A stretch of DNA of 64,000 nucleotides from Klebsormidium nitens (lineage: Eukaryota > Plantae > Klebsormidiophyceae), in the NCBI GenBank assembly GCA_000708835.1, contig DF237216.1:54660-118659 (forward strand). The letters are read 5' to 3'. Below are positions 13,161 to 35,746 of the stretch, one piece after another. Made by a program: the position numbers and the translations under genes. Each line of letters starts with the position of its first letter. Positions within the stretch are counted from its first letter, which is position 1. The notes beneath the pieces were generated by a model that was not told the origin of the DNA, did not search any database, and worked only from the letters and a program-made list of their open reading frames with translations.

Positions 13161-16100
13161 ATGGCGCCCGCTAGTGACCTCCCAGGCGTGCCTGCCACAC
13201 TTGCAAATCAGTTGCAGCAGAACAATCAAGAGCACATTCTCGATCATCTTTCAGAGTTCGAGCCCCCGCATCAACAAGAGCTGATTCAGCAGCTGGAGGG
13301 CATTGATCTTGTAAAGTTGGCCCAGATCTTCCAGGAGTCCATCGCTCCTGCACTACGAGCTGAACATAGCAATCAGACGGGAAGCTCACAAGAAGTTGCA
13401 GAGATACAGCCTGTCAAGAATGTGAGCACAATCAGTGGACGTACAGATGCGGAGAAGGAAAGATGGAACAAGCTTGGGTTGGAAGCGATCGCAAAAGGAG
13501 AGGTAGCTATCTTGCTGCTAGCGGGGGGTCAGGGGACACGTTTGGGAAGCGACGCCCCCAAGGGGTGTTTCAACATTGGGCTGCCTAGCAGCAAAAGCCT
13601 GTTTCAGCTGCAAGCAGAGCGGATACGGCGCTTGCAAGAGCTGGCCACTGGTGGTGGCGAGAAACGTGCCACCATTCCTTGGTATATTCTAACCAGCCCC
13701 TTCACGCACCAGCCGTCCCAGGCGTTCTTCAAGGAGCACAACTACTTTGGTCTGCCAGCTGATCAGGTGAGCTCAGAGTGGGGGTGAGCTCAAACAACAG
13801 CTGACTTTGCGAGCTTGATCCGAGCGACTGCGGTTTTGACAGTCGACTTGATTCACCTCTCACCTCTATACAGACGGATCACTCTGTGATCTGAGCAAGT
13901 AACATCCAGACAGTGGACTCAGTCCTCCTCTTATCCCTCACCTCCTACATCAACAGGTCACTCAGATCATCAAGCTCTCTGTAACGACCCCAAGGTCTCA
14001 GAGTTTTGCCGCTGCTATCTCTTGTCCGCTGATTCCTTGTGCCCCCACTTTCTGTTCGTTCCTCAAGTCTCGAAGTCCTGCCACTGCTATCTACTGTCCA
14101 CTGATTCCTTATGCCCCCCCGGCAGGTCATCTTCTTCCAGCAAGGCACCCTCCCTTGCCTCGACCGCACTGGCCGCCTCATCCTCGCCACCCCCTCCACG
14201 CTCGCCACTGCCCCCGATGGAAACGGGGGGGTCTTCCTTGCCCTCAAATCCTCCGGCTGTCTCGCCGACATCTCTCGTCGGGGGGTCAGATACATCGATT
14301 GCTTTTCAGTCGACAATGCGCTGGTCAGAGTGGCAGAGCCAACTTGGATCGGACACTGTATAGAACGGGGGGCAGCAGCCGGGGCTCGGGTGCTTAGGAA
14401 GGCGCACCCCCAGGAAAAAGTGGGCGTGTTTGTGCAACGTGGCGAGGGGGGCCCAGTCGAGGTGGTGGAGTATAGTGAGATGGAGCCAGCACAGGTGGCG
14501 GCGACGGACCCAGAGACGGAGGAGCTGCGGTTCTCCTGGAGCAACGTGAGGGGATGTTTAAGACTTCCTTGAATACGAATTATTCTGAGACGCGCTGGGG
14601 CTCTTTCTTTCAAAAGGGAGTTTCAACTTCAACTTCGAGCTTCAAACTTCAACTTCGAACTGTGTACTTGATTCCATTGGAAGCAATGTGTTTTGGATTT
14701 TATCTAGCATGGTTTCATCCATCTTATTGGGCCCTGTTGAGGACGTACTATGATCTTTCATGAAGAAGCATAACGAAGAGTCAGTGGTGGTCATGGAAGG
14801 AGTAGAATGCGTTTCATTCCTGCTCTGGCATACCAGGCTGAGTCATAAAGCAAACTGATGTAGTAGTCACTCTCATATTATACGCAGCTTCGTCTCATCA
14901 CTAACCTGAACTGCGAAATTTTGCAAAGAGAGTCCTTTCATCACGTATGACCTTTCTTCTTTTGAGCTAACTCAAAAAGTCTACTTGTACTGATTGCACT
15001 GGCCTACCTCGCAACCGCTTTGCGCATGTCTCCCTCTTCACTCCTTCGTACACAATGCATCCTTCTTTGGAAGCAACTTCCCTTCTCAGACTCTGCAAGC
15101 ACTGACCTTCCCGCACTTTTTCCGGCCGTCAGATTTGCATGCACTTCTTCACGACGGCCTTCCTGGCGCAAGCTGCGGCCGCGCTCGAGCAGAGCCGCAA
15201 CTACCACGTGGCCTTCAAGAGCATTCCCTCAATCACCGGGCCTACTCCGGGATGCAAGTTGGAGCAGTTCATCTTTGACGTGTTTCCGTTGGCGGGGCAG
15301 GAGGTCGCCCTTCTCGAGGTGAGGCAGATCCTGCCAAGATATGAAATTTTTGTCGTTTCAACCACGCTTATATTGAGAGGAATAGGCATCTATGGTATGG
15401 AATCGTTGGAAGGGAGGACCCGACTGATTGATACTGCAGCAAAGCAACAAGGACTGCTGAAACAGAAACAGTCCATGTTAAAGAGAATGGTGAGAACACT
15501 TTCCATTCAAAGGCCCAAATCTTCCAAAAGATTGCTTACTGCCTTCTGGTTTGCATCCGGATGCAAAATGGTGCTCTTCATGGAAAATGGTGGAATAACG
15601 TTTCATTGGCAGACTCGTTCCGGTAGCGGGAGCCAGTGCTGTCTGACATGACGCATCTTGAGGAAGCGCGAAAAACCTGAAGGAGAAAAAGTGTTGTTTG
15701 AAAGAGAGAGCCAACTTCCGGGGGGACTGAAAGAGGCGGGTTGAAAGGAGCAAGTCGAGCCATCGACGATGCCACCTCATAGTACTTCTTATTGTAGACG
15801 AGTGACTGGCTTCTCTTTTCTGTTTTGAGAGTAGTGGCAGAGGCGTGTGGGACGTATCTTCTCATAACATACACGGAAGGGATCGAAGAGGAGAGCCAGT
15901 GACGCTCAGGCCAAGACCCAAGCGATCCTCCCTGTATAGAGGGCGATAGGAAACGCTTTCCGATGACCATGGGATACTCGCATCGGCAGAGGCGGTGCTT
16001 TTGTGTTCAAACAGTGCTTTCGGCCCGGAGTGGCATCACTCCGCAATTTTGAATTGCAGTGCAGTCAAAGCAATGAACCTCGCAGCCAGCCCCAATCCTG

Positions 16101-17099: not shown

Positions 17100-17915
17100 C
17101 TAAGCTCCCTTATCCCAGGGGGCCTTTTTGACCGAAGCTTTCACACGCGCGTCTCTGGCTGCCCATTCCGCCGCACGCTGCTGGGCACGCTGCAATTCTG
17201 CCGCTTCTCGCTCCATGACTATAGCTTTGGCGTGCACCTTCAAGAGCTCTGCTTCCAGCTTTTTGACGGCTTTGTTCACAATCTTTGTACTCTTAGTGGA
17301 ACAATAGTCTCCGGGTGAGGAGCGATCCAATTCGTGGAGAAGGCCCAACAGCCAGCGGTATGAGGCAGGCGCCGCCGGTTGCGCTCCCTCAAAAGCTGCC
17401 TGCTGGCGCCGGAACTCCGCTAGAACAAGTGGCCAGAGCTCCTGTGAGCCTATGGCAATGTGCAAGTCTTTCCGTTCGGGGTTCCTGTAGGCACCAAAGA
17501 GCCGCAGCAGAAAAGTTGCGAACTGTTGAAGCTGTTTGTCATAGAAGACTATTCTACCACCTAGCACCGACAGCTCCTCTGCAAAGGCCTCCGGAAACTC
17601 CTTTTGGTGCGATTCCCAGCACTCAAGGAGCCGCGCCGCATGGGCAGCCAACTGCAACTCTCGTTTCATCTTTTCCTCTTCCGTTATTTCCCAAAGGTAT
17701 GGGCCGCTCCATTCAGCCACTTCACGGAGAACCCACGCAATGACGACAGAAGGAGCGGGTGTGAGGTCGTCAGTTGCTGTGTTCTCTGCTCCAAAATCTG
17801 TCCCTTGACAGGTGTCAAGAAGCTCCAAGTTCTGTCCTTTCTGCACGTCCTCTGGAGAGATGCCGTCAGCAGGCGGCGGCCTGGCGGCTCCGAGACAAGA
17901 GCAAGCGACGCCCAT
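17100..17915 (-). CDS. Unknown MGxxC...KAPWD family protein, copy A (intact, 271 aa, single exon)
   Basis: Starts MGVACSCLGA. Shares PSVVI[AS]WVL, QLxAHAxRLxxCWE, AFAEEL, LHIxxGSQELWP and KKAPWD with four other copies. The start is assigned by homology within the longer ORF 17100-18125. Confidence 0.85.
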   Translation of the reverse strand: MGVACSCLGAARPPPADGISPEDVQKGQNLELLDTCQGTDFGAENTATDDLTPAPSVVIAWVLREVAEWSGPYLWEITEEEKMKRELQLAAHAARLLECWESHQKEFPEAFAEELSVLGGRIVFYDKQLQQFATFLLRLFGAYRNPERKDLHIAIGSQELWPLVLAEFRRQQAAFEGAQPAAPASYRWLLGLLHELDRSSPGDYCSTKSTKIVNKAVKKLEAELLKVHAKAIVMEREAAELQRAQQRAAEWAARDARVKASVKKAPWDKGA

Positions 17916-19165
17916 CGCGTCCAGAGCGGAACAAAGACATGCAGCTTTTGCCGAGGGGAGATTTTGCAAGCATGGCCGGCGCGTAGCAGCCGCGCGCGCC
18001 TTACAACGGCGGGTTTGGAGGATCAAGATTCGAGGTTCATCGTTCGTGGAGAACCGCGGGCGGCCGGCCGCGGTAGGCGCGAGCCAGCCGACGCACATGC
18101 GGCTGCGCGTGCGCCTCGACGCCATTCGATCACATCACTTTCATGTTGTAAATAACCTCAGTTGCGTTTACGCGTCATGCCAGATATCTGGCCATGAGCT
18201 CGCCCGCGTTGTTGCAGAGCGTCTCTTCCTACTTTCTGACTTTGTCGCCTTTCTGACGATGTATTTATTGAGGGCAAAGGTCGGAGAATTTGCGCCGACG
18301 TTCATGCAAGTATTAGTTGATCTTGAACCGCCCATCGTAGACCAATTGCACAATATACGGAAGTCGATATACGCAATACATTGAAGGTTGGCTTCCTAGC
18401 AAGGAGTACTCTAGCATGCATAGAATTGGCGAGCAGTTAAATGTTTCCCTCCTGCCGGGCCGTGCAGGTTGGAAAGACGCTACCTTCAATTACTATTATA
18501 GGCAAGCACTTATGGTTTGAAACTTCTTAATCCGGAAGCTTTGATCGATTACGATATACATGTTGGTAAAGTGCGGAGAAGTTGTCACAATCAAGGTAGG
18601 ATCCAGAGTTCCGCATGACATTCAGTGTCAATAGCAAGTTTGTTATACGTGAGTGCCGGAGAGACGGTTCGCAGGAGCTCAAGTCTCTTTGTCCGTTCAA
18701 AAGCTTGGGTCCTGAATTTTTTTGCAATGATGATATAGAATAAATCCTCGTATCTGCCTGAATACATTTGTTCAAGGTGCCTCGATCGTGCAAACATAGT
18801 GATGAGATTTGCAAACGAAAAGGATGACGACAAGGCGTGACGACTGTCCAACTCGGGGGTCTGCTACAACGCTTCGATCCCGTGCTCTCATCAAACTTGG
18901 ATTGCGGTTCCGCAGTTCTGAAACGGTCGTTCATGCATTAATGCATGATAACATCTCGGCCATTCGCAGCTAGTCTGGTTTTCTTTCCAAAGAAGCTCAG
19001 CAACTAGCAGATACGAGACGGAGGACTTTTCTCAGGCTCTGACTCTCCGGGCAAACAACTTCAAGCAAACGACTCTGCGACAATTTGCACACACTGGTCG
19101 ACGAGAGCAACTACGTACAATCGTCATCGTATTCTGCTTCAGTGCACCGTATGCCCCTACTGACA

Positions 19166-19986
19166 TCACGCCATTCCCTCCACTGCAGGTGCTTCCTTAT
19201 CCCAGGGTGCCCGTTTGAGCGGAGCTTTCATCTGTGCAATTCTGGCTGCCTCTAGCTCTCCCATGGCTTTTCTTTCCATCTCGATAGCTTTGGCGTGGAC
19301 CTTCAAGAGCTCTGCCTTCACTGGTCTTATTGCTTTCCACACAGTCCCTGAATTATCAGGGTAAAAACATGCGTTGTACAGAGGCAAGGAGCGATCCACC
19401 TCCTGGAGAAGGCTCAGTATCCAGCGAGTTGAGGCCGGCGATGCCCCTTCCGCTTTCTGAGCTGCCTGATCATGCTTCCGGCGGAACTCCGCCAGTAGGG
19501 GAGGCCAGAGCTCCTGTGAGCCTATGGTGATGTGCAGCGTGTGCAACGTTTCCCCCCAGCAGTATTTGTTAGCGCCAAAAAGCCGAATCAGAAGATGCGT
19601 GACCTGACGGCATGCATCGCGGCTTGTGTCATCATCACCACCTTTGAAGGGCACTGACAGCTCCTCTGCAAAGGCCTTTGTGAGTTCTTCTCCATGCTTT
19701 TCCCAGCACTGAAGGGGCACTGAAGCAGCCGCGCCGCATGGGCTGCTAACTGCAGCTCCCTCTTCAACTGATCTTCTAGCCGATTCCAGTCAGCCACGTC
19801 ACGGAGGACCTACGCAATGACGACAGAAGGAGCGGGCGTCAGGTCCTCCGCTGCTGTGTTCTTTCCTTCAAGCTCTGTCCCTTGACAGGTGTCAAGAAGC
19901 TCCCGATGGCCTTTTTGCACGTCCTCAGGGGAGATGACGTCAGCAGGCTGCGGCCCCTCTCCCAAACGGGTGCAGGACGAACCCAT
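19166..19986 (-). pseudogene. MGxxC...KAPWD family copy B, disrupted
   Basis: Starts MGSSCTRLG. TGG to TAG nonsense at 19810-19812 (VVIAW in copy A) and an 11-bp frameshifting insertion at ~19706-19725. The 3' ORF 19166-19720 is open and ends LKRAPWDKEAPAVEGMA. Confidence 0.85.
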
Positions 19987-21560
19987 CTCGTCCAGAACGT
20001 GAACAAACACACGGTATGCTGCGGCATGTGATCCGTATCAACCGCATGCCAGACCGGCGTGTAGCACCGCGTACCCGCGCGTGGGGGTTTGAAGGTTTTT
20101 AAAAGAAAACCTCTGCCTGCGCGGCCGGCCGCGGCAAGCGCGTTTGACATGCGACGCGGCCGCCGGCACACGTCCCCGGGGCCGGCCGGCCCAGGTTGGG
20201 AGCTGCACGCCGTCATGCCTGGTACTATAAGAAGCAGGCAGAGGTCTCGCAGAAGTTTGCAGACGTTCGATTTCTACTTTCAGAGCAAGATCGTTGAGTC
20301 GCTTTCCGTGATCTGGCCAGTGCTCCAATTGATATGCCTCAAAAAGCCGTATCGGTTTTCAATCAGCGATTCTTTTGGGTATATGGCTGTCGCACAGAAT
20401 CCTAGAAGATTGGTTGCAGACACCTGTTGCAATGTCCCGCAGCCTAAAGCCTAGGACGACCGTCAATTGTGACCTCGGGTTTGACCAGTACTTATCGAAA
20501 CGCATTTGCGAGGGCCAACCGAAATTTTATTAGATTCAAGTACTTAAGCGTTCAAACGCCAATATGCCTCAAATTGCCCATCGACTCGTCATTTCTGTTG
20601 AGAACAATAGAAAAGGAGCAGGATTCGACTTGGGTGAGAGTAATCCGGGGGCGTCTTGATTGTTTAATGCCGGCCGAGTCACGTGCTTCCGCATGAATCT
20701 CCTCAGCACTTTATGCGAAAGGCTCAAGCTGATGGATTCCTCCGCTTCTTTTCCGAGGAGCTGAAACGTGTCGGCCAGATCTACCGGGGTTCGTCTGAGC
20801 GCCGTCAGATCGATCTGCCGGGGTGACGGAAAAGTTACTGTTGCGACAAGAGAGTGCTTGACCATTTTTGCCGGCAGCGCCTCCAAGAACATGTGGCTGC
20901 GCGCACATTGCAGCAGAACTCAACATTGGGAGCGGGCGGAATTCTCCCCGAGATTTATACGAACAATAAAGTCAAAGCTCGTGCTAAGTACGAGGATGAC
21001 AGAGCGACGCTTGGACGCAAATCGAAGGGTCGAAGTTCGTCAAGTTTGCTAAGTTGTGCGCCGAGACGAAGTTGAAACCTTTGCAACGTGGAAACGGCTC
21101 GTTTGCGGCTGTGCGTCTCAACGGTCTGGCCCCGTCATTTGCAGAGACACCACACGCTAGAGTGCATTTGAAGCGTGGTGCCTCGGAACGACGTTACAGG
21201 TACAAGGCAGTCGCTTTCATCACGATGACTAGAAGACCACGCAGTTCTCGTTACTTCGAACTGTGTCCGCGCTTCGAAGCATCCAAGTCTTCGTTCGACC
21301 TTTCATTATGACTCTCGTTGCTTTTGTAAGCCGCCTTCGTTCCGTCTTCATCACGTACATCTAGCAGCTAGCTGGCTGAAGCGTGACGGAGGTGAAATAC
21401 CTAGGTGGTTGCTGTGACGCTTCACAGGTTCTATCTGAACATCAGGATTTCCAATTCCTTCAAACACTCTTAAGAGGGGGAGCAGACCGTTCTATTTTTG
21501 CAAGCATCCGTCTATCCTCCTCGTCACCTGGTCGAAAACTTGCCCGCCCGCTCAAAAAGC

Positions 21561-23451
21561 ATGGCTACGTACCTTGTCCATCTTTCTGCCGCGCCTCGCT
21601 CTCGCCCTGCACCTCTTATGCGCCTGCGCCCTCCGAATCGCGGCGACCACCGGCGCCTCCCGCAGACTGATATAGTCGCCCCTTTCGGCTCTGACCGCCC
21701 CAGTGGCGAAACTCGCACCGCTGCCAGCGCCATCGTTAGCCCCAACTGCCACGTCGTCTCTGCTCGGCCCGGGGGGCATCCAGCCGCGTAAAACATCCCC
21801 CCCCGGGCCGGCGCCTGTCGTGACGTCACGGACCACGTTACCATCTGTCCCGACCACCCCAAAAAGCGGCCCGATCACTTCACTGGCTCCTGCCCCGGCG
21901 CCCGGCCCGAGTCCTGCTCTGGCCATCCTGGCTTCGGTCCCGAGTATCAACTCCGTCGATCAATTTTTGCGGGTAGCAAATGGCAAGCAGGTGAGCTGTC
22001 GACTTGTTCATAATCAGCGGGTGATTGTTTCTTGATGAAGCTTAATGGGGGTTCGGAGTAGGAGGCACCTCGACGTGGTGATCCCGTCTTTCGGATTCTG
22101 GAAATTCGAAGCGACGAATAAGGATTCTGCAAATATCTCCTTCAGCTAAGCAACAAAGGATCCAGCAATGAGCTATAAGTAGGAGACCAGAGCTAAACTA
22201 GGCCCCTGATCTCATCCTCTCCTTGTACTGAGGATCACTCAGCCTGTCAACGGCAGAGTGTTCAAGCTGCTTGATGCGGTGCATATATGTCTCAACCAGA
22301 CTGGGCGGCACGAAGCTACTCAGGGTTAACAAACCGGGTTTAACGTGTGGTCGTTTTGGGCGACGTTCGGCGCCTGCCCAAAAATCATGTATGCCGGGCT
22401 GTTATTCAGATGTCGGCGACCGGAAACAAGGTTGAGGAAATAATCATCTTTCAAACGGTCGAAAATGGATGTGTGTCACGGCATCGAAGTTGCTCAAGAG
22501 CAAACCCTTCCCTCTGCAGCCGGCGATCATTTTCTTCACCGCAAGTTCTTTCTGTGGACCATGCCGTGACATCAGCTCAGCCTTTGCGCGCTTGGAACAA
22601 AAGTATCTCAACATCAACTTCTTCAAGGTTGACGTCGACGCGCATAGCGTGAGTGCCTCGTTTGAAAAAGTTCTTCCGAAAACTCGAGCTGGCGACTTGA
22701 ACTCGCTGCGAGAATGAACTCGCCGCGGGAACAGATTTTTTGATTCACCCAATTTTCCCGGCCCCATCCTTTATATCTTAATTGAACCCACTTGTGCTTA
22801 TGTATTTGATCTTCGATTCCTTGCAAGGAATCATGATTCATGTCTTTTGGCCAACCTCTGAAATCGAGCGGAGACTTTGCTTTTGAGAACGGCCTATCAG
22901 CCCATGTGACCTGCTGATTGCTTCTGCAGATACGAGATACTTGAGAAGACAACTCTGATGTTTGTATGCCAGTAGTGATGACGACATGTCACTTACTTTC
23001 AAAAAGTTCTATATTCGCGACCACGCCGCGCCTAACTATTCAATACTAAAAGCGGGAGGTTTGTGGCAAATGGCACATCTCGTATGCTTGTACCTACATT
23101 AAATTGATGTAGGTCGAGCTCCCTAGTTCTCGGTTGAATTGCGGTCAGAGCCTGACAAATTGCGAGTTTCTACATCTAGGTTTTGACATTTCGTGAACAC
23201 AACGGAGTGAAAGAGATCAATCCTCGACTGCTGCGACTTTGACAATGCAGGATATTGCGCTCGGAGTGGGAATCCGCGCACTGCCCACGTTTATTGCTGT
23301 CAAGAGTGGGCAATTATTGGGCACAGTTCTTGGGGCAGATTCTAACGCACTGCAAAAACTAGCTGTCAGAATCTCCTCTACGTGGACAGACGTAGCCTCG
23401 AGATCGCTTTCTTGTCAAGCAAGAATCGATATCACTGGACTAGCTTGGTAA
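21561..23451 (+). CDS. Atypical thioredoxin (FCGPC) with N-terminal Pro/Thr/Ser-rich extension; 5' end uncertain, possibly pseudogene
   Basis: Exon ending at 21990 (...VPSINSVDQFLRVANGKQ), exon 22520-22648 (PAIIFFTASSFCGPCR...FFKVDVDAHS) and exon 23251-23451 (DIALGVGIRALPTFIAVKSGQ...), all phase 0, together give a complete Trx fold. Upstream, the frame has TAG at 21673 and the ATG at 21561 is out of frame. Confidence 0.8.
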
Positions 23452-24704
23452 GCCTCCCTCGGCCAGACGCCTTGGCCAGACGCAAGCATAAAATTCCAAG
23501 GATCTTTTCAAATGTATGAAGAGAAAGACTTCTTTTAGACACATTTCAGATGAGGGAATCAACTCGAAGACTCTAAGGAATGATACATTTGAATTATGAC
23601 TGATCCCTCTGCATTACCTGCTCCACACGGAGAAGAACTTCAAGCCTCCTGACGCTTGATGCCAGGCCAGAATACAACCTCAGAAATCAGAATAGCCTAT
23701 CAATTAAGGAAGCTCGGTCGTCCTTGGGCTGCCTGCATGTCACTACTTGGTACTTGCATGACAAACCTTGTACTTGGCATTTCCAATGCTGAGCGCAATT
23801 CCTTCCGATTCTTGAAGCAGACAAAAAGCACTCAAGCTTCAGTGCCCTTGCAATTCTTATGGACCGTATCATGAAAAGTCGAGCAACTCGGTCTTCCGAA
23901 CGGAAACGGATGCCCGTCGTCACTTTTGGCTTCTCGTCTTTGGGTCCACTTCCGGTTGTTTCTTTGCGTGCGGAACGTGTACTTCTTTGCTGACCGAGCG
24001 TCGTGAAGCTGATCTTAGAATCTCTGGACAGGTCCAGACACTCGCGGACAGAGGATACGCTAGCAACTGATTACAGCTCGATGATGACTGGGTAGGACAG
24101 CAGCCGTAAGAACCGTTTCCACGTGCTAAGCAGCTGCTGCAGAGCTTGATAGGATATAAAATGTTCTGAACACAGGCGCTTTTGCCTGGAATTTAATGCC
24201 TTACACGTGCATAAAAAACAATCCAAAATGCGCCTGGGCCCGGGGTTTGAAATGCGGCATCATGACGCACATTCGTCGCGGCCGCCTTGGCGCCCAAGGG
24301 GCGCCAGATGTGCTCGCGGCAGATTGTCACCAGATGGACGCCACATCTGCCACGCATCACTCACGCACCTGATATTTGTTGATTCACGTCATCGATTGAC
24401 GCCACTCATGCGCCCAACGAGCGTATGCCACGTATGCGCTAAGTGGGCGGAAACTTTCTATATTACTTTGGTGCCAATGGCAGTCAGGGACATGAGGACG
24501 TGTGGCGCCTAAAAAGCATCACTTAGCTGGGGGGTTACTTTGTGATGCAATCGTACATCGCACGAGAATCTCAACCGAGCACGGGCCATTTCACGTGCCC
24601 TTGGCCAGAGCGACATGGGCAACTTCGAGGACTTCGAGGTCACTGGTCTCAGGATTTTCAGAAGTAATAGCCATCAGTATCCGTGGAAACTGACAGGCGA
24701 TTGA

Positions 24705-27700
24705 TCACTTGTCGGAAGGCTTCGGCGTGGTCGGCGCAGGGGTGGTCGGGGCAGGGGTGGTCGGGGCAGAAGTGGTCGGGGCAGGGATGGTCGGGGCAGG
24801 GAGGATTGGGCTAGGGGCGGTCGGGAAAGGCGTCGCAAGCGCGGTCGTGTTTGCTGCACAGGTGCAAGGTTGCCTTTTAAGGGTCAGATGTTAGCCGCCC
24901 GTCAGCCGTTTGAGTGAATTCTGTCAATCTTCTTTTCGTGACAGCCTTCTCAGGAAGCAAAGGCGCGGATGGAAGACTTAGACTCTAAAGGTGTGGTTCG
25001 TTGATCTTCGACCATTTGAATGTAAGCGTGATGCGTGCGGCCCAATGAGTTGACAAGCTGCCTTAGAAAGACCGGATGAAGGCTGGCAGGACAAGACGTC
25101 AGTAGTGAGTAATCCCAAATCGCATCCGCTTCGCAGCAGACTCGAGTCCCTGATCGTGGGCTGCTCGCTTGTAGATTGTCGGGCAATACTAGAGCGGTCA
25201 GACTCTTGAAGATGCTTTCCTGTCCAGAAGGTCCGCCTTGGTTTGCTTACAAGGTTCATCAGAATTATGTGAGAACTTTAGGTTTAAGGAAGAGATAGCG
25301 TAGAACTTCCTCGGGAGGCAGCATCAGCCAAGCTGAAGCCTGAATACGTTTTGATATCGAGCTCAATCGACGAGCAGTGCAGGTTTCTGCCTTTGTCTAT
25401 ACCGCTCAAAGTTCTTCTCATCACTTTCATTGACGAGTCCCTCTGTAGTTGCAACAGGGGTAATGAGCATTCGGTTGATTTCTGATGTACTACACGAATC
25501 AATGTTTCGAAAATAAGATTCAAGTAGAATGTGCAAACCTTGAGAATTAGCTTGACACGCACTTACCAGGACACAAGCCAGCATTGGCTGTCGCTGTTGG
25601 GTAGATATTGATCACAGGAGCGCCGGTATAGTTGTATGCGCAATATACTGATGCTTTGAAGTCGGGGAACTGAGGCCCATACACGAACACAAAGTAGAGG
25701 CAGGCAGCCCCGTAGAAGGTAAGCGGGGGAGCCCCCCTGGGGTATGAGGCCAACAGAGGGCACGAGTTTGGAGCAACCGTTTCTGCAAACAGAGACATAC
25801 ACCGGGTTCGATTTACTCAAGCTGATTGAGAAATATAAATGGAGATGGAGTTGAAAAGAAATCCGCGAAGTGAATGTACTTCATAGCGCCAACAATGGTA
25901 ATGCAACGAGTGCCAAGTCAGAACCCCAGAAGCGGCCGCAGGTAGGCATTCAAGGACGAGGCGGAAGACGAAGCGAAGTGGAGTTCCTGGGTCCGTTTAG
26001 AAAGACTCGCTGATCAGAAGAACGGCTGGTTAGCCTAGCCCAACTCTGGGGGCCTATCCACCTGCCAGACAAGGGTTAGTTCTGGTGAGGCATCGTCTCT
26101 GAAGCATGCTGCAGGGAAAAAGTTTTGAGTCTGTGTTACATTGAAGCTAGGCTGCTACTCATTCTGCAGAGTATTTTCCGGCTGCACACTTAGAGGGTCG
26201 TACGTGGATCTAACACTACGTATGGTAAGACCGTTTCAAGATCAGATGAAAGAACATTGGGAACTTGTTTTAACTCCGAAGCTTCATCTACAAATAAGAT
26301 GGTTTGAAAAGTTTCACTCAGGAGGTCACCACTGGCACTGATCACAAACCCAGCAACGTTCAAAATTTCCCTGAAAACGTAAACGCTGAAACGGTAAGAA
26401 CGGTTCTGTGTTCAATAGCGCTTGGCTTTGATTGGAACACTATCGCCCAAACGGGTCCTCGATCGGCCCAAAACACTATAAGCGGACTGAACACAGTCCT
26501 AGGATGCAGGGTGACCTGGTGGTTTGTGTGGGTACGAGCTGCGCGGAGCAGGCAAACCTTTCTTCAGGTTATATATTAAGCGAGGTCTTATTGACGTTCA
26601 ATAGGCAGCTTATATCAACTTGATCGAGAAGGACGCGAAAACGGGACGGAGAGCAACTGGCGAGAGCAACTGAGAACTGACCGGGGCAGGCACCCGGGGG
26701 CGTTGGAGGATTTTGGAGGATACCGCTGGTGTCGTAAGTGCAGGGTACTACTCCGACGGGACGGCCGGGTAGAGTTGGATACGTGAAAAGGCAGTTTATC
26801 TGATTCCACGGTTGCCCTTGCAGCCGTTCAACGGGCGGGCACACGGACGTCCAGAGAGCTGCGGTTTCAACGGAAGACAAAATCAGGGTTAGTCGATGAT
26901 CAATGGTTCTTTTGGATTCATGCTTGATCGAAAGCGACGGAGTAAGCGGGCCGTTTCCAAATGCGGGAAAGATTCGGAGCGGCAGAATGCATAACGAAGC
27001 AGGAAGATAGAGGTATGATTGGTTTTGCGCGTGGAAAACTTCGATAGGGTCGGTCGTGTCCAACGGATGACAGAAAACGTGAGGATGCACTGGAGTCACT
27101 GCCGATAAGAGCCTTACCACGTCTGATACACCGGGGTAACTAAAAAGCTGAGCGCGTTTTCAGATTACGTCTTGAGGCCAAACCAACTTTGCGTCCGGCC
27201 GTGAAAGTATCAACTTAGAACCCAGCGTTCCAAGATTTAAAAAGGCTGAAGTACCCACGGGGTGTTGGTGTAGGTACCGGCATCGGAGAGAGTGTCAGTT
27301 GGGTCTGCAGTGGCTTGCGTTGGGCGACGCTGGTCGTGTGGCCGGGGACACTTCCCGGGCTCGAGAGAGAGTCTTGGTCGGACCCGGTTGCTATCACCTG
27401 GGCATGGCAGGAGGGATCAAGCATACTCTATTTTGCAGAAGTGTTTCTGGCAGAAGAAATTCAAATGTTAAAGGGTTTCGATACCAAGCTCGGTTGAGCT
27501 TGGCTCAATCTCCCTCCACTTTGAAGTCAGCTGGAGCTCCTTGATGCTTGTTTCATGCTTTTGAGTCTGAGCGGATCCTAAGGTGTCATGCTTCGAAGCA
27601 GAACAAATCGAAACAAGGACTGGATGTACCGTCATAAAAGGTACCTGGTATGAATCGTCGGCCCTTTGGAGCGCAGTAAGTTGGAGCGATGAGGTGCCAC

Positions 27701-28085
27701 AAACATTTTAAAGGAATGATGAGGCTGGCTAAGCGAAAGTGGAATCATTCTCATCTTGCCCATCATTCAGGGATCTACTACAAAGTTCCTTTGAAACCAG
27801 GATCCGGTAACATTTAAGCTTGACTATATCAGGAAGAGTTTGCAATATTAGGCATACCATACCAGGTTTACAAGTACTCCCGAGACACAGAAGAGTACCT
27901 TAGAGTTGACGGTTACAGATCACGCGACAAAAGAGGACGAAATTCATCTGTCTCACCTTACTCAGGTATAACATAAGAGATGTTTACAGAGATCGTTGAA
28001 GCCAAGTTCTCCTCACCTTGGACCTCTGAACAAGGAAGAAAAACAGGCAGACAAAGACAAGCGAGGAACAGTAGAGGAGCGCCAT
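24705..28085 (-). CDS. Secreted protein, 249 aa: signal peptide, two 4-Cys modules and a PAPTT mucin-like tail
   Basis: Exons 28017-28085 (MALLYCSSLVFVCLFFFLVQRSK), 27259-27397, 26682-26858, 25567-25782 and 24705-24853, with phases 0/1/1/1, GT-AG boundaries and no internal stops. Confidence 0.8.
24718..24832 (-). repeat. Coding 15-bp tandem repeat (PAPTT)
   Basis: ggggcaggggtggtc-type units on the + strand, translating on the - strand as PAPTIPAPTTSAPTTPAPTTPAPTTP. Confidence 0.9.
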
Positions 28086-28431
28086 GTACTACGCGCGCGC
28101 AGCCTAGCGGCGGCGCCCGGAAATGACGGAGAGGTGGCGCCTTGCTGAGGGAATGAAGTATCGATCAGGAGTGTGCGAAACAAGCGGACCGGGAAGGCAA
28201 AGTGAAAGACAAAGCTTGAAAGACGTGCAAGTGTTTATGCTCTGGCGAAAGACTCGCTGAGACAATCTGGGCGCCGGCCGAAATTCGGAGAACCTGGCAG
28301 GGACGACCCTCGTCAAATCACTCTTGCATTCGTCTACAAAGCAACCCCTCGAACCTGATCCATACCAGAACTACTTTCGGGCATCTGGTCTCAGCACAGA
28401 GGGACCGATCGATTTGTGGCTGTGGCTTGAC

Positions 28432-28473
28432 TCGAACTCCAAGGATGTGGATCGAACTCCAAGGATGTGGATC
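28432..28473 (+). repeat. Perfect 20-bp tandem duplication
   Basis: tcgaactccaaggatgtgga at 28432 and 28452. Confidence 0.9.
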
Positions 28474-28973
28474 TTCCGGTTGACGACTGAAAACTTCGAG
28501 GAGTCTCGACTCTTCTACAACCTGGCTAGGCTCCCGTTCAGAGACTAGGTAAGTTCCTGTGCAACACGCGTGCAATCCGCAGCTACTTCATCTTGTGACT
28601 CGTCTTAACCTTGTGCGATGATTGTTGAGGTCTCTATAAGAAGCCTTGGATTCCAAAAGTCATCAGCGTGGCAGGCGGTTAATAGTTACCCAGCAGCTAG
28701 AGATCCGAAAGAATCTGGATCGCAACCTGAAGCGCGCACTTTACGCGCGCTTGCCGCCGGCCGCAATAAACGGGCAACGCGCGTCGGCCTGCTTCAGCTT
28801 GTCGCGGCCGGCTGCAATTCGAACTTTGAAACCTGCAAACCCGCCGACCTGGGGCGCCCGCGGGCGGCTACGCGCCATAATATGCTGTTTCATCAGGTCG
28901 ATCCATCTTCTTCATTGCCAGATCATTCTACTTATCCCTAACGAAGAAATGAGTTTGTTCACATTGTAAGAAC

Positions 28974-29812
28974 ATGGGCCTTTCCTGCTCCTGCCCCGCT
29001 TATGCTGCAGCGCAATTGCTGACGGCGTTGCTCCGGAGGACGTGCATAAGGGCGAGAATCATGGTTCTTGCCAAGGCGCTGGAGCGCCGAAAGAAGAGAG
29101 AGCTGTAGCCGTGGATCTGAAGCCCGCTCCCAGCTCCGTCGTCATTTCTTGGGTCTTTGATGACGTCTTCAGGAGCAAGTGGGGACTGAGCAGAGAGGAG
29201 AAAGAAATGCGCGAAGTTCAGTTGGAGGCACATGCTGAGCGGCTGGGGAGTTGCTGGGAAATGCATGGTGACGATTTCACCAAGGCTTTTGCGGAGAAAC
29301 TCATGGCACGTGTAGAATCCATATTCTGCACAGACAGCCAGCTGAGGGAGGTTTATCCATTCCTTGTGGGGCTGTTTGGTGCTTGCACAGGCGGACTAAG
29401 CTTACACGTCACAAGGGGTTCGCAGGAGCTTTGGCCTTTTGTTTTGGAGGAGTTCCGCCGGAAGCACGAGCGGTTGGCTCGAGGAGTGGAATGGGCGGCA
29501 CCTGAAACAACGAACTGGCGGCATCAAATCCTCTGCGTCCTCCATCATCTGAATCACTACTCAATACTTTTTAGCAAAGAGGAGGGTTCTACCGAAGCGC
29601 CAAGCGATCTAAGAAGAGCAATCGGAAAAGTCAGATCAGAGCTGTTGATTGACCAGAACAAAGCAGAACAAGAGCAAGCGGACAAGAAGGCAAAAGAGGA
29701 AAGGGAAGCCAGAGAAGCGAAACTCAAGGCCAAACGACAGCAGTTCAAGGATTCCTTGAAAAGAGCGCCTTGGGACAAGGAAGTAGCTGTAACAGGCCAG
29801 GAGAAGCCGTAA
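28974..29812 (+). pseudogene. MGxxC...KAPWD family copy C, frameshifted near the 5' end
   Basis: Starts MGLSCSC. There are 62 nt from ATG to the GAG-GAC codons against 57 nt in copy D (+5). The remainder (ORF 29042-29812) is open and closely similar to copy D. Confidence 0.8.
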
Positions 29813-31501
29813 AGAAGACCAACTTGAAGAGAGTAGGGTAGGGAGTATGCTGTACACAGGAACAGCTAGAGATTGCTCATGACGAGCTGGCGCTTGAGGT
29901 CCTATCAGACCGGTCATCTTATTTTCCAATTGTGTCGAGCAGACGTATACAGCGCAGAATTTCCGTCAGCTTTGGACGGATTGAGATTGAATCATCGCAG
30001 CCGGCAATGGTGACGTACATGATGGGCATGCCGTAAAATTTTATGCCTCGCGGCTGTCCATGATGCACGCGTTGGACGTTGTAACCAGGTGCCAAATCGC
30101 TTTAATTTCACGGGTGCCCCTGCAACCCGGAACCGCATTGATTTTTACGTGCCACGTGCACAACGGATTCCTTGAGTTGCACACTTTCAGATCTTACGTT
30201 TCATATGCCAGTGCTAAACCGACCTTGGACGATGGATATTTATAAAAGGAATTGTATACTTTGATACTTATCCCCTAGAATAAGACCGCAAAGCTAAAAG
30301 CACGCACGGCTTTTGGCATATTGCTGCCTGAGTGGGCATCCGCAGACTGATGTGAAAACGTTCATTGCTGTCAAGGGTAGGCAGGAGGTGGGAGAAGTTA
30401 TTTGTCTAGATCTCAACGCATCGCAGAAAGTAGCGGCCAGCCTAGCCTGAACCTTTCTTCTCTTAAAGCGGTCGTTGCTAGAAGGGATGGATAGGCGTTA
30501 CTAAAAGAATCTTCGCGCACCCTTAAAAAAGTGCTCCAACTAATCCAAGAGAGTCCGCGAATCTTTTCAAATGTACAGAGGAACGTGTGCTTCAGACACT
30601 TTGTAGATCTGAGAATTAGCCTATAGGTTTCGAAATCTTACACGGGTTCTGAAACGAGCAGTCTGAGATTTCTGATTGACCCCTTAGCAATCTGAAATCG
30701 CTGATTGACCCTTGTAATTGCAGACTTGCTCCGTATGTGTACCAACTCCAAGCCCTATGACGTCGAACCCCAATAGACGCGAATACCAGACTTCGGATCG
30801 ATATTCAAAAAGAAAGCTCATGCGTCCACTTTTTGCCTGGTTGTCGATCCTGCTACCTGCATGTGAACGCTTGTGCATTGACCGTTTCCAGTGCTGAGTG
30901 CACTCCTTCCGACTTTGAATCAGATGCAAAACAGCTAAACGTGGGGTGCCCTTGCAGATTTTAGTGAATTGTATTGATGAATCTCGACCCCTTCGGCTTT
31001 TCCGAACGTACGTGGGTGAAAAGCTCTTTTTCGACTTTGACTTTCCGTCTTCGGGTCGATCCCCTTGGGGTCGAGAAACGGTTCACAGTTCTGCACGTCC
31101 AAAATTCGACGAGGCTAAAAATTCACAAGCAATTGAGCACATCTGCATGGAATGAACGGCTCAAAGAAAGGTTCCTTCGAGAACGAAGAGACAGATGTCC
31201 TGTCTGGTCCTGTCGGCACTCGCGCGGCCCGTTCGCGCTTGCGCAAACTGCGCGCGCACTTGCCGCCGCCGGCACAGCTGGGCAACCCGCGTCGGCCTGC
31301 TTGAGCTTGCCGCGCGCGGGGCCGCGGCCGTTGATCCTGCACTTTGAAACCTGCAAACCCGCCGTTTTGGGACGCCGCGGGCGGCTACGCGCCATTGTAT
31401 GCTGTTTCATCAGGTCGATCGGTCCATCTTCATCTTCAGAATTTTCAAGTTTCTATCCTCAACAAGCCGGAAGGGCGTGAGTTTGTTCACTTTCTACAAA
31501 C

Positions 31502-32353
31502 ATGGGCCTTTCCTGCTCTTCCTTGGGCGCTGGCGCGAAAAGTGACGTCATATCTCCAGAGGACCTGCATAAGAAGAACGTCCCTATTTCTTGCCAAGGC
31601 GCTAGTGCAGAGCCGAAAGCAGAGAAAACTGCAGCCGTGGATTTGAAGCCCACCCCCTCCGTCGTCATCTCTTGGGTCCTTGATGACGTTTTTAGAAACA
31701 CGTGGGAACTGAGCAGAGAGGAGGGAGAAATGCGTGAAGTTCAACTGGAGGCTCATGCAAATCGGCTGTGGAGTTGCTGGGAGATGCACGGCGACGAATT
31801 TGCTATGGCTTTTGCCGAGGAACTCATGGCACGTGTAGAATTCATAATGTGCTCAGACAGTCAGCTTAGAGAGGTCGCTCCTTTTCTTGTGGGGCTGTTT
31901 GGTGCCTGCACAAGCGGCCCAAGCCTCCACATCACAAGGGGTTCGCAGGAGCTTTGGCCTTTTGTTCTGGAGGAGATCCGTCGGAAAAACGAGCGGTTGG
32001 CCCATGGAGCGGAATGGGCGGCACCTGAAACAACGGACTGGCGGTACAAAATATCTAACTTTCTCTTTTATCTGAAGTACCACTTGATGCAATTTAGCGA
32101 AGGCGAACAGTCTACTGAAGCGTCAAGCGATCTGAGGAAAGCAATCGACAAGGTCACATCAGAGCTTAGGATGGAGCAGAAGAAAGCACAACAAGAGCAA
32201 GCGGACAGGAAAGCTGAAGCGAAAAGACTAGCTAAAGAAGCGGAGCTCAAGGCCAAAAGAGAGCAGTTCAAGGCCAAAAGACAGAGATTCAAAGATTGCT
32301 TGAAAAGAGCGCCTTGGGACAAGGAAGAAGTGGCGGGCGAGGAGAAGGCGTGA
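31502..32353 (+). CDS. MGxxC...KAPWD family copy D (intact, 283 aa, single exon)
   Basis: Continuous ORF MGLSCSSLGAGA...LKRAPWDKEEVAGEEKA carrying all family motifs. Confidence 0.9.
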   Translation: MGLSCSSLGAGAKSDVISPEDLHKKNVPISCQGASAEPKAEKTAAVDLKPTPSVVISWVLDDVFRNTWELSREEGEMREVQLEAHANRLWSCWEMHGDEFAMAFAEELMARVEFIMCSDSQLREVAPFLVGLFGACTSGPSLHITRGSQELWPFVLEEIRRKNERLAHGAEWAAPETTDWRYKISNFLFYLKYHLMQFSEGEQSTEASSDLRKAIDKVTSELRMEQKKAQQEQADRKAEAKRLAKEAELKAKREQFKAKRQRFKDCLKRAPWDKEEVAGEEKA

Positions 32354-33808
32354 GGAAGATTTGCATACCCAAAGAGAGGAGAGTAGCAGAATGCCATACG
32401 TAGGAAAGCTAGATTCTTCTGACGGCTTGTGGTCTTGCTAGCTAGAGTACCACTAGAAAGTATATTCTGCAATCATATAGTTATACGAAGCATGGCACAG
32501 TACGTACGGCGCAGATTTTTCCGTTCCAATTTGGTGGACAAAAAGTTGCACATCGATAAAGTTTGGTGCATGATGACGCCACTAGTGGGCATGAACTTGT
32601 CAGAGATCAGGCGATCAGGGCGGCACCCAACGTCTGATTGTCTCATAAGAATAGTGCCGACGTCGAAACCCCAAGCCTCATGGTCATGGCCATGATGACT
32701 TGCAATCTCCACCTGCGTTTAAATCTTTCTCGCGTTGTGCAGACTGGGATTTTGAGTCAACTTCAAGAATGCTTGCAATGTGGCCGAACAAAAATATCTC
32801 GAGAAATAAATTGTGTAATTGAGTGGAAATTAGTAATGCGCGAAAGTGAAAGCGTGCACGGCCGTCAGCCTGTCTCACCAGCCGTCGGGGTTACTTTCGC
32901 ATGGGCGGCTTGATAATACAAGGCTTCCTGTCATTTGATGTGCCAGGGGGACGGAGACGTGAACGCGGCAATGACATGTGGAGGCATCCTTGCCTGAGAT
33001 TTCAGATTCGCATTGGTCTACCATGCAAAAAACGATTAGTCTGGTCGAACCTGTACCACAGCAATTTACGTCTTCTTTTATAGAAAGGCGTTACATAAGC
33101 TTTGACTCTAGACCTCTTCAGACGAATCGAGAAACTGTTTAACCAACTCCACGCCAAGCCAGGTTCTTATCCTCCCCATCCATTTGATTGCTGCATGATG
33201 TCACGTTTTGGCGGTTGCAGCTAAGCGTGTCAGAATGCGTCTCTCAAAGCGTGACTCAAATGCGTCTCTCAGAGAGTAGTATCAGATGCCGAATAGCTCA
33301 GATCTAGGTGCCGTCACATTCAGATGACATGACATGGATCTGAAAGACTCGTTTGTGCCGGACGAACTATAAAAGAGATGATATCTTTCGCGCGCGGGAT
33401 CGGTTGAAGGCGTCGAAGGCGGTGGCCCCCTCGGGCTGGAATTGGGCACTCCGGCTTTCACGACATGTTGAAGGAGGTTCAGAAGCCGCAAACGACTCTG
33501 GAGCGAGTCTGTCCATATGCTTGGAATAGACGACCCTATTTAAAGGGTTTTTCAGGAGACAAAGATTACTTTTCCTTCTCGATCGAATTGGTTCTACACA
33601 TATCGCGCATTAAGGCGCGCACGCGCGCGCTCTGTCATGAGTGGGCCCGGGACTCCGCCGACTCGGGCCGCCCGCGGCCGACAAACGCGCCATGCCATCT
33701 GGTCGAAATCCGTCGATCTCGTCTCGTATTCGGATCAGTGTGTTCTTGAAGAAGCAAAATCAAACGCGTGATTTGTTTTTGTTTTTGTTCACCTTTCACG
33801 GGGTTAAC

Positions 33809-34574
33809 ATGGGCCTTTCTTGCTTCTGCTTGGGCGCTAGCGCGGGGTCTGCTGACGGCATAACTTCGGAGGGAAAGGAAGCCGCAGCCATAGCAGATCC
33901 AGCGCCCGCTCCCTCTGCCGTCATCTCATGGGTCCTAAGTGACGTCCTCACTAGTCCATTTCCAACCCGGTATCCAGCGGACGGATGCAGTGTGGCTGCT
34001 TGGTCAGTATGAGGCCCATGCAGAAAGGCTGAGAAGCTGCTGGAAGATGCACCCGAAGGATTTCCCCAAGTCTTTTGCCAATGAGCTGATGGTGTGTGTA
34101 CAAGCGGCGCACAATCAGCACTACCGCGGCCTCAGCAACCTCACTCATTTCCTGGTGCGGCTCTTTGCTGCTCGCCCAAGCGACCCAGACTTACACATCA
34201 CCAGAGGTTCGCACGAGCTTTGGCCTATCGTTTTTGAGGAGCTCCGCCGGAAGCACAAGCAGCTGGCCCGAGGAGCGGAATGGATGGCACCTGAAACGAC
34301 GAGCTGGCGGGAGAACGCTCTTGAGCCTTTTCTCCGTTATATGGAGTCCGCACTACCTAATCGCTACGAGGAAGTTCCGAGCCGTTTAAGAAACACAGTA
34401 GAAAAGCTCACAGCAGAGCTGTCGACTGAGCAGACAAGAGTGAGAGAAGCGCGGTACAAGGCCGAGAGGGAAGCTCAGGACGCGCAATACAAAGCCAAAC
34501 TGGAGCAGTTCAAGGCTTCTGTGAAAAAAGCGCCGTGGGACAATGGAGCATTGGCAGGCGAGGAGAAAGCATGA
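33809..34574 (+). pseudogene. MGxxC...KAPWD family copy E, frameshifted
   Basis: The MGLSCFCLGA frame stops at 34012. Homology resumes in another frame (YEAHAERLRSCW...VKKAPWDNG). WVL to EAH spans 82 nt, not a multiple of 3, and I found no GT-AG intron that restores the frame. Confidence 0.8.
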
Positions 34575-35746
34575 CGCAAATTAAACTTGAAACCTGGTGT
34601 AAGCCTGGAAAGAAGTAAACTGTTTCCATGAACAAACTATCTGTCATGACACTTGTGTCATTTGTGGAGCATATATCGCCATTATTCTTTGAGCATGGTA
34701 TCGTCAGAGCAGTGTCTGTTCAGCGTCGGTTGAAGGTTGGAAATAGCTGAGATGTGACGATAATCATGGTACGTTGTATAAGTGTTAGCGTGGGTCTTGA
34801 CGTAAGACATCTCGCTTACCGGTGTCTATGTACGGTATGCCATTAGATTTTTAGTCAAGAGACCATCGTGCATGACTTCAGGTCTTACATTCCGATTGGC
34901 TTGTTCATTGCGTAGTGCCATGCGCGCAGATCGGAACCTTTCGTATGTTGAAGATCTTACACATTTGCACAGGTCTGAACGTAGGCGCGTTTCAAGTGTA
35001 GTACGTATTCACGCCCGGCGATATCTTATGCAAACATTTGTACATATCAAGTTGATTTTCAATGGAAACAATTCAATGAATGCGCCACTGCTTTCAAACT
35101 TTGAATATATATGCGAACCGCGGCGGCCGGGGGGACCGGCTCGGCAGACTGCGGAGCCCTCACGTCAAAAGGCGGGTGCGTATAACCACAGGTCGGGCCT
35201 GCCAGATCGGATCAGCCGCCGTACTCACGTTGGCAAGCATCATATCTTGTACCACTGCCAGCCTACTAAGAATGGGCCCGAGGCTTCTCAATCTAGCTCA
35301 GCGACAATGACAATCTAAAGGCTTCTTTGCAAGCTTCGAGTTTAAGTCCGGTTTCATTGAAGACACGGCTGATTGTTTATCGCAGTTGCTTGTGATTATC
35401 TTCATACAGAGTCCACCGTTTTACATGAAATGGCTCCCTAACACATCGTTCTTTGACAAAAAGCACCCTAACGAAACTTTAGCACCGTTTCACCCGATTC
35501 GACTCGTGACCGCCATTTGGCCCTTGTTACACCGCTGGCAGTAAAGCTTAAAACGGCTTCCTATTCAAACTTTGCCTCTAGCTGTAAAGTGTTGCATATA
35601 GACATGTAACTTACACTTCGCGCTACACATGGGACACACGTAATCTCACAATGCCGCGATCTGGCACCTATTGACTCTCAAATGACGTTGTCTGACCTAT
35701 CAATCCACGACTAAGGCGCACTGGACGACGGAAACGCATCTTTTTC

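Follow-up and report, generated by a model that had tools for sequence, protein, structure and literature searches.

Tandem paralogs of a Klebsormidium-lineage family of predicted lipid-anchored helical proteins, evolving by birth and death

Klebsormidium nitens is a reference species for tracing land plants back to algal ancestors at the level of the genome, in which a large share of genes is unnamed and orphan tandem families are common. Here, we analyzed a 64-kb stretch of K. nitens scaffold DNA (hereafter the window), which holds a cluster of five related coding elements that we name A to E. We propose that these elements are tandem paralogs of a family of the Klebsormidium lineage, intronless and predicted to encode soluble all-alpha proteins of ~270 residues. 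The proteins of the two intact copies, A and D, would be held at the cytosolic face of a membrane by a lipid anchor and would serve there as non-enzymatic adaptors or scaffolds, while the cluster evolves through tandem duplications and the repeated inactivation of copies, with purifying selection relaxed. We assign this explanation as a whole, that of a lipid-anchored helical adaptor family undergoing birth and death, a probability of about 55%. Its core, a functional lineage-specific family that bears an acylation signal and evolves by birth and death, is very likely to be correct; the adaptor mechanism itself is put forward tentatively.

Using A and D as tblastn queries, we found exactly five family copies in the window, in agreement with the initial annotation, which had placed five intronless homologs at these positions and had counted two of them as intact and three as disrupted. 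A (17100-17915, minus strand) and D (31502-32353, plus strand) are intronless genes with uninterrupted open reading frames (ORFs) of 271 and 283 amino acids (aa), respectively, each recovered both as an ORF and by tblastn, and D matches residues 1-283 of the deposited protein KFL_002670100 at 100%. Copy B (19166-19986, minus strand) is a pseudogene, as seen from its three-frame translation and its DNA, and gives tblastn matches in two frames. An in-frame stop at 19810-19812 replaces the Trp of its VVIxW motif, and a frame-shifting 11-nt insertion with the appearance of a tandem duplication (CTTCAGTGC..) lies at about 19704-19725. Pseudogene C (28974-29812, plus strand) retains its ATG and the residues MGLSCSC, but a single nucleotide is missing near 29017 (near codon 14), relative both to D and to the ortholog in a sister genome, and throws the sequence that follows out of frame; the remainder of C (29006-29809) is open in another frame. 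In the third pseudogene, E (33809-34574, plus strand), tblastn and three-frame translation show that the reading frame changes somewhere from 33946 to 34005. In an independent public run, one contig spans 33799-34059 with zero differences, indicating that this frameshift is real and not an assembly error of the deposited record. The copies are spaced by ~2.07 kb (A/B), ~2.52 kb (C/D) and ~2.25 kb (D/E), with genes for a thioredoxin and for a Cys-rich repeat protein sitting between B and C, and the similarity between copies stops within ~230 nt upstream and ~60 nt downstream of the coding sequence.

The three gene models deposited for the cluster, KFL_002670080, KFL_002670090 and KFL_002670100, all proved chimeric when compared with the ORFs and the three-frame translations. 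In KFL_002670080, the first 58 codons of B, which end at its premature stop, are followed by A beginning at residue 13, and A is 100% identical to this model over 96% of its own length. KFL_002670090 consists of thioredoxin exons, a translated 15-nt repeat and C, while KFL_002670100 comprises the whole of D followed by the 3′ half of E. The repeat translated within KFL_002670090 lies at 24712-24831 and is made of six tandem 15-nt units coding for (G-V-V-G-A)n. Five further family members (P0007, P0010, P0030, P0028 and P0039) carry N-terminal extensions in which we found no Pfam domain; because all three models of the window are chimeric, these extensions may likewise be artefacts of the models. 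Annotation errors such as those flagged here distort or inflate gene counts in K. nitens. Once corrected, three mis-built “hypothetical protein” models give way to one defined family, with a domain plan, a predicted lipid anchor, a promoter signature and a history of birth and death in two genomes.

To delimit the family, a six-member profile was scored against 1.84 billion representative proteins at a cut-off of E <= 0.001, which gave only 40 matches. All named matches are K. nitens proteins labeled “hypothetical protein,” corresponding to 10 gene models on 7 scaffolds (KFL_002670080, KFL_002670090, KFL_002670100, KFL_004040150, KFL_001090230, KFL_003720030, KFL_002960110, KFL_002960150, KFL_002460140 and KFL_004530160). 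The unnamed Logan matches for which we looked up the run come from SRR23617307, the source of the sister genome, or from SRR14092358-60, and the remaining unnamed matches are further Logan contigs and two samples of the Joint Genome Institute (JGI); outside the sister genome, the unnamed matches trace to a few environmental assemblies. A second profile search, based on a broad alignment, returned no additional relatives, and pattern scans of 2.9 million viral contigs and of JGI metagenome contigs found no members of the family. By these sequence searches, the family is narrow, being confined to Klebsormidium and close relatives.

The proteins had been described at the outset as an unrecognised family, a description that the searches of Pfam, PDB sequences and viral data bear out. 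A Pfam-A hmmscan of A, D and 25 family members yielded only sub-threshold noise at E <= 0.1; a hit to DUF3347 in the charged helix described below was rejected, as it reached 18 bits against a cut-off of 25.5. A profile search of PDB sequences gave nothing below E = 0.25, a search of the ESM Atlas by sequence features gave no usable match, and exact-protein look-ups of A and D in public assemblies did not recover either protein. In the literature, we found no paper that mentions this family, its locus tags or the run. One member encoded on another scaffold, P0020 (KFL_001090230), contains its FL..F / HIKxGSQELWP segment twice, seen as two matched stretches, and may represent either two tandem copies that have fused or a genuine repeat.

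We then turned to the protein architecture, using an alignment of 25 family sequences both to score conservation and as AlphaFold input. Among these sequences, which are otherwise 23-50% identical, six positions are invariant (P52, V55, L89, W93, F100 and F128) and four more are conserved in at least 90% (H85, R88, C92 and W152). The shared motifs listed in the initial annotation are thus present and conserved family-wide, and its view of the proteins as helical is matched by the predicted structure of D (model m4dba2fd80131, mean predicted local distance difference test [pLDDT] 84.8, predicted template modeling score 0.72). In this model, residues 1-50 are disordered, and a conserved [IV]-S-P-E-D-[VL]-x-K-G motif is held in a disordered linker of ~45 residues. 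There follows a predicted six-helix bundle (helices 52-64, 72-96, 98-114, 119-132, 152-168 and 175-201), which carries the family signature PSVVIxWVL, HAxRLxxCW and LHIxxGSxELWP, the last of these forming a short beta-bridged loop. Beyond the bundle, a 63-residue helix (206-268) leads to the APW[DE] end, which in the family takes the form K-[KR]-A-P-W-[DE]. We found no transmembrane segment, the highest Kyte-Doolittle score over 19 residues being 1.15.

The distal half of the long helix had been taken for a charged coiled coil. The charge is indeed there: this segment consists of 45-79% E/K/R/Q/A and varies from 15 to 47 residues in length across family members. Its few hydrophobic residues and variable length, on the other hand, are more like those of a spacer than of a heptad coiled coil. 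In D, residues ~225-268 are 79% E/K/R/Q/A and 15% hydrophobic and form one unbroken predicted helix with a pLDDT of 95-98, so that, at least in the clade of C and D, the segment looks more like a single-helix spacer. In A and other members, this segment contains 22-28% hydrophobic residues and may form a coiled coil.

Structural relatives were sought by exhaustive VIA-align scans of 48,161 chains, of which the top 50 were viewed for each of two models, and by Foldseek. In both models, the top neighbors of residues ~49-237 were the CNOT1 SH domain, the MIF4G domain of Paip1 and the MA3 domain of Pdcd4, with Z scores of 9.9-10.8, which lie below the tool's helical background of about 13, a root-mean-square deviation (rmsd) of 3.4-5.2 Å and 127-168 aligned residues. 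The predicted fold class is that of a HEAT/MIF4G-like hairpin stack; since the matches are within the chance range for helical models, this term describes shape and not ancestry. Foldseek gave no match at E <= 0.001 against the PDB or viral models, its best E value being no better than 0.03, and the ESM Atlas searched by structure returned only generic TPR/HEAT shapes, with template modeling scores of 0.45 or lower depending on the query. The GDI-like domain of YopO/YpkA topped one list with a Z score of 11.2 and was rejected as a long-helix artefact on account of its rmsd of 10.6-12.9 Å.

All five copies open with ATG-GG and thus encode a Gly directly after the initiator Met (Gly2). Across the family, Met-Gly occurs 44-62 residues before the PSVVI anchor in 28 members, and at any distance in 30. 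At Gly2, the PROSITE pattern PS00008 (G-{EDRKHPFYW}-x(2)-[STAGCN]-{P}), a permissive pattern that matches many proteins, fits 27 of the former and 28 of the latter, with A (GVACSC) and D (GLSCSS) both conforming. In the clade to which the window's copies belong, this motif is accompanied by a Cys at positions 4-7, a putative S-acylation site, and in the MGLF[AS]AIKR clade by Lys/Arg instead; basic residues near a myristoyl site are the other classical second membrane signal. The Met-Gly-x-x-x-Ser/Ala signature is kept across paralogs that are only 25-30% identical, so that the MGxxC-type acylation signature first noted in the window stands as a conserved sequence pattern across deep paralogs. 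Two observations show that this Met-Gly is the true start, even in A, where the ORF is longer: the sequences that precede ATG-GGC in orthologs have diverged by indels of lengths not divisible by three, and an in-frame stop stands 2-3 codons before the ATG in C, in D and in L001a, a copy in the sister genome. From their N-terminal sequences, the intact proteins are probably N-myristoylated and S-acylated.

Conservation extends upstream of the coding sequence. When 14 upstream regions from K. nitens and the sister genome were aligned, four blocks, named box0 to box3, outdid much of the coding sequence in conservation. In this alignment, box0 reads GCGCGTCGGCCTGCT; box1 (CAAACCCGCCG) and box2 (CCGCGG..CTACGCGCC) lie together 60-150 nt before the ATG, and box3 (TTTGTTCAC) precedes it by 8-20 nt. 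Pattern search and alignment place the combined box1-box2 element three times in the window, upstream of A (17978-18017, minus strand, with box1 as CAAACCCGCC and then box2 as ..GCTACGCGCC), C (28836-28876, plus strand) and D (31354-31393, plus strand); these are the only matches, with 0 expected by chance. The pattern of box3 followed by ATGGG has four matches, all at family starts, for 0.05 expected: B (19982-20007, minus strand), C (28954-28978, plus strand), D (31482-31506, plus strand, 11 nt upstream of ATGGG) and E (33784-33813, plus strand). Six more box3 matches are found at family starts in the sister-genome contigs.

Conserved boxes are thus found upstream of every copy of the window's subfamily in both genomes, and they are absent from distant family members. 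The simplest reading of these sequences is a common promoter or 5′ untranslated region (5′-UTR) cassette, and, the architecture being shared, members of this subfamily are probably co-regulated. We also considered an RNA hairpin in box2 and rejected it by eye, as the pairing of the flanking GGCGCG and CGCGCC is not kept in other copies; the boxes are therefore read as DNA elements. They may resemble CGCG-type stress elements.

The sister genome, represented by contigs L001-L003 of assembly SRR23617307, carries tandem clusters of the same kind, with three, five and two copies, some of them broken. In a maximum-likelihood tree, the sister-genome partners are L002e for A, L002d for B, L001b for E, and L001a for C and D jointly, with support of 95-100 for the A, B and C/D pairings and of 93/93 for E/L001b. 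Because C and D together pair with a single copy, the duplication that produced them postdates the split of the two genomes. The ortholog of A (L002:11868-12668) is 74% identical to it in aa sequence, with a ratio of nonsynonymous to synonymous substitution rates (dN/dS) of 0.36; C and D are 70% identical with a dN/dS of 0.39, and the D/L001a pair has a dN/dS of 0.35. The B/L002d and E/L001b pairs are broken in both genomes at different places, showing that the same copies were lost independently in the two lineages; the ortholog of B (L002:9204-10046), for instance, is truncated by a different stop. Their dN/dS values of 0.24-0.52 are like those of intact pairs, indicating that inactivation is recent and recurrent. 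The sister-genome orthologs of E and B that are broken at other positions than in the window lie at L001:4123-4896, L002:4957-5804 and L002:9204-10046.

Pairwise dN/dS is 0.26-0.5, a level of relaxed purifying and not diversifying selection, and no comparison over a whole gene gave a value above 1. Sliding windows reach or approach 1 mainly within the disordered linker, and raised values of 0.5-0.97 extend across residues ~152-244. The cluster is also syntenic: its neighbor downstream of E (36117-37772, minus strand) shares 79% identity with the gene that lies downstream of the L001 cluster (L001:9062-10516, minus strand). The family diverges faster than this neighbor, with 61-74% aa identity vs. 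79%. Taken together, orthology, synteny, the lineage-specific duplication of C and D and independent breaks in two genomes confirm the birth-and-death evolution that had been suspected from the window, at a dN/dS of about 0.35-0.45. The downstream neighbor is itself a single ORF of ~550 aa, rich in Pro/Ser, with a conserved Cys-rich C-terminal end and no Pfam domain. Elsewhere in the window, ORF fragments at 10466-11098 (minus strand), with a Methyltransf_32 domain, and at 13161-13787 (plus strand), with a UDP-glucose pyrophosphorylase domain, belong to ordinary multi-exon neighbors of the cluster.

In the explanation that we favor, the helical bundle and the distal APW[DE] peptide, the latter extended on the charged helix, would both act as protein-binding surfaces. 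Several observations weigh against it. Met-Gly is missing from P0011, P0013, P0017, P0023, P0028/31 and P0037, so the lipid anchor is not universal in the family. Evidence of transcription is very weak: no indexed RNA run covers the stretch 28800-34700, which spans C to E, and four probable RNA assemblies of the same species gave over this stretch two short contigs of depth about 3, at 33799-34059 (261 nt) and 34470-34666 (197 nt), both over the broken copy E. No contig was found over C or D in these four assemblies, although contigs cannot prove absence. Finally, a catalytic or metal site would be an equally good reading of the near-invariant polar residues H85, R88 and C92.

That last point leads to a different picture, a membrane-tethered enzyme or metal-binding protein in which His85, Arg88 and Cys92, on one face of helix 2, and the LHIxxGSxELWP loop would form the active or metal site. 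Besides the conservation of the helix 2 residues in the 25 sequences, that of H143, S148 and E150 in the close clade speaks for such a site; however, C92 is a Ser in P0006 and P0007, H143 and S148 are not kept in distant members, and neither sequence nor fold resembles any enzyme family, making this an unlikely explanation. The scarcity of transcripts would in turn fit a family in decay, its function largely or wholly gone and A and D being only those copies that have so far escaped a disabling mutation. The breakage of three of the five copies here and of several in the sister genome, with orthologs broken independently, would fit this as well. We hold such decay to be quite improbable, since dN/dS between intact orthologs stays well below 1 over a dS of about 0.5-0.75, both genomes retain full-length ORFs, and deep paralogs still share the motifs and the upstream boxes.

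A role in defense, cell death or recognition had been proposed for the locus, together with a comparison to MLKL/HeLo/RPW8 four-helix bundles. In its explicit form, the proteins would be executors of cell death or immunity whose anchored bundle oligomerizes and disrupts the membrane, and their birth and death would reflect an arms race. The combination of a lipid-anchor signal with a helical domain, the tandem arrangement, in which pseudogenes occur and each lineage has gained and lost copies of its own, and the faster evolution relative to the syntenic neighbor would fit such a role. Positive evidence for it was nevertheless found neither in Pfam profiles nor in structure scans nor in dN/dS. 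The HeLo, Helo_like_N, RPW8 and MLKL profiles match 0 of 25 members at E <= 0.1, and the 50 best entries of each exhaustive PDB scan, like those of Foldseek, included no such structure, an absence that is no formal exclusion. The model shows a stack of 6-7 helices in hairpins behind a 50-residue disordered linker, without an N-terminal four-helix bundle, and dN/dS is 0.26-0.5 overall, with the highest values, mainly in the linker and residues ~152-244, amounting to a weak signal. We consider this role very unlikely. Least probable of all is a selfish or foreign ORF family, derived from a transposon or virus and carried with its own promoter without host function. The intronless, multi-copy and lineage-restricted nature of the family, its presence on at least 7 scaffolds and the upstream cassette of each copy would suit such an origin, but we found no inverted, terminal inverted or long terminal repeats flanking the family units in the window and no anomaly in its base composition, no relative among the 2.9 million viral contigs and none among viral structure models, and copies that are orthologous and syntenic in two genomes rather than at new sites.

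Returning to the lipid-anchored adaptor family, confirmation of the anchor and of a binding partner would make it a lineage-specific membrane-proximal module for stress or signaling networks; failing this, it would be an ordinary orphan family. A more far-reaching scenario, which we regard as a long shot, is that the Klebsormidiophyceae invented a lipid-anchored signaling or recognition module with its own fold, jointly induced by a stress-responsive cassette (the CGCG-rich boxes 1 and 2 with TTTGTTCAC) and presenting APW[DE] on an adjustable spacer helix to a common partner. If true, such a module would amount to a novel membrane-proximal pathway in an alga that serves as a model for plant terrestrialization.

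The proposed proteins share traits with several known systems. Like the MLKL, HeLo and RPW8 proteins, some of which occur in expanded gene clusters with fast turnover, they are helical and are proposed to act at membranes; they differ in helix number and topology, with a linker before the bundle and a charged helix and end motif after it. The CNOT1 SH domain, the MIF4G domains (Paip1, eIF4G, UPF2) and the MA3 domain (Pdcd4), to which the best structural neighbors belong, are scaffolds for protein-protein or protein-RNA contacts, but sequence identity to them is 9-16%, no profile matches, and those domains are not lipid-anchored, so that we claim no membership. The segment at residues ~225-268 of D resembles ER/K-type single alpha-helices, a known class of spacers, in being a charged, unbroken predicted helix whose length varies between paralogs. 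Finally, the N terminus is akin to that of dual-acylated plant and algal signaling proteins, an example being the calcineurin B-like Ca2+ sensors with their MGCxxS-type N termini: the family has Met-Gly, a small residue at position 6 and a neighboring Cys, with basic residues in other subfamilies. It differs from these proteins in that it has no EF-hands or other known domain, its body being a family-specific helical bundle and its lipidation a prediction.

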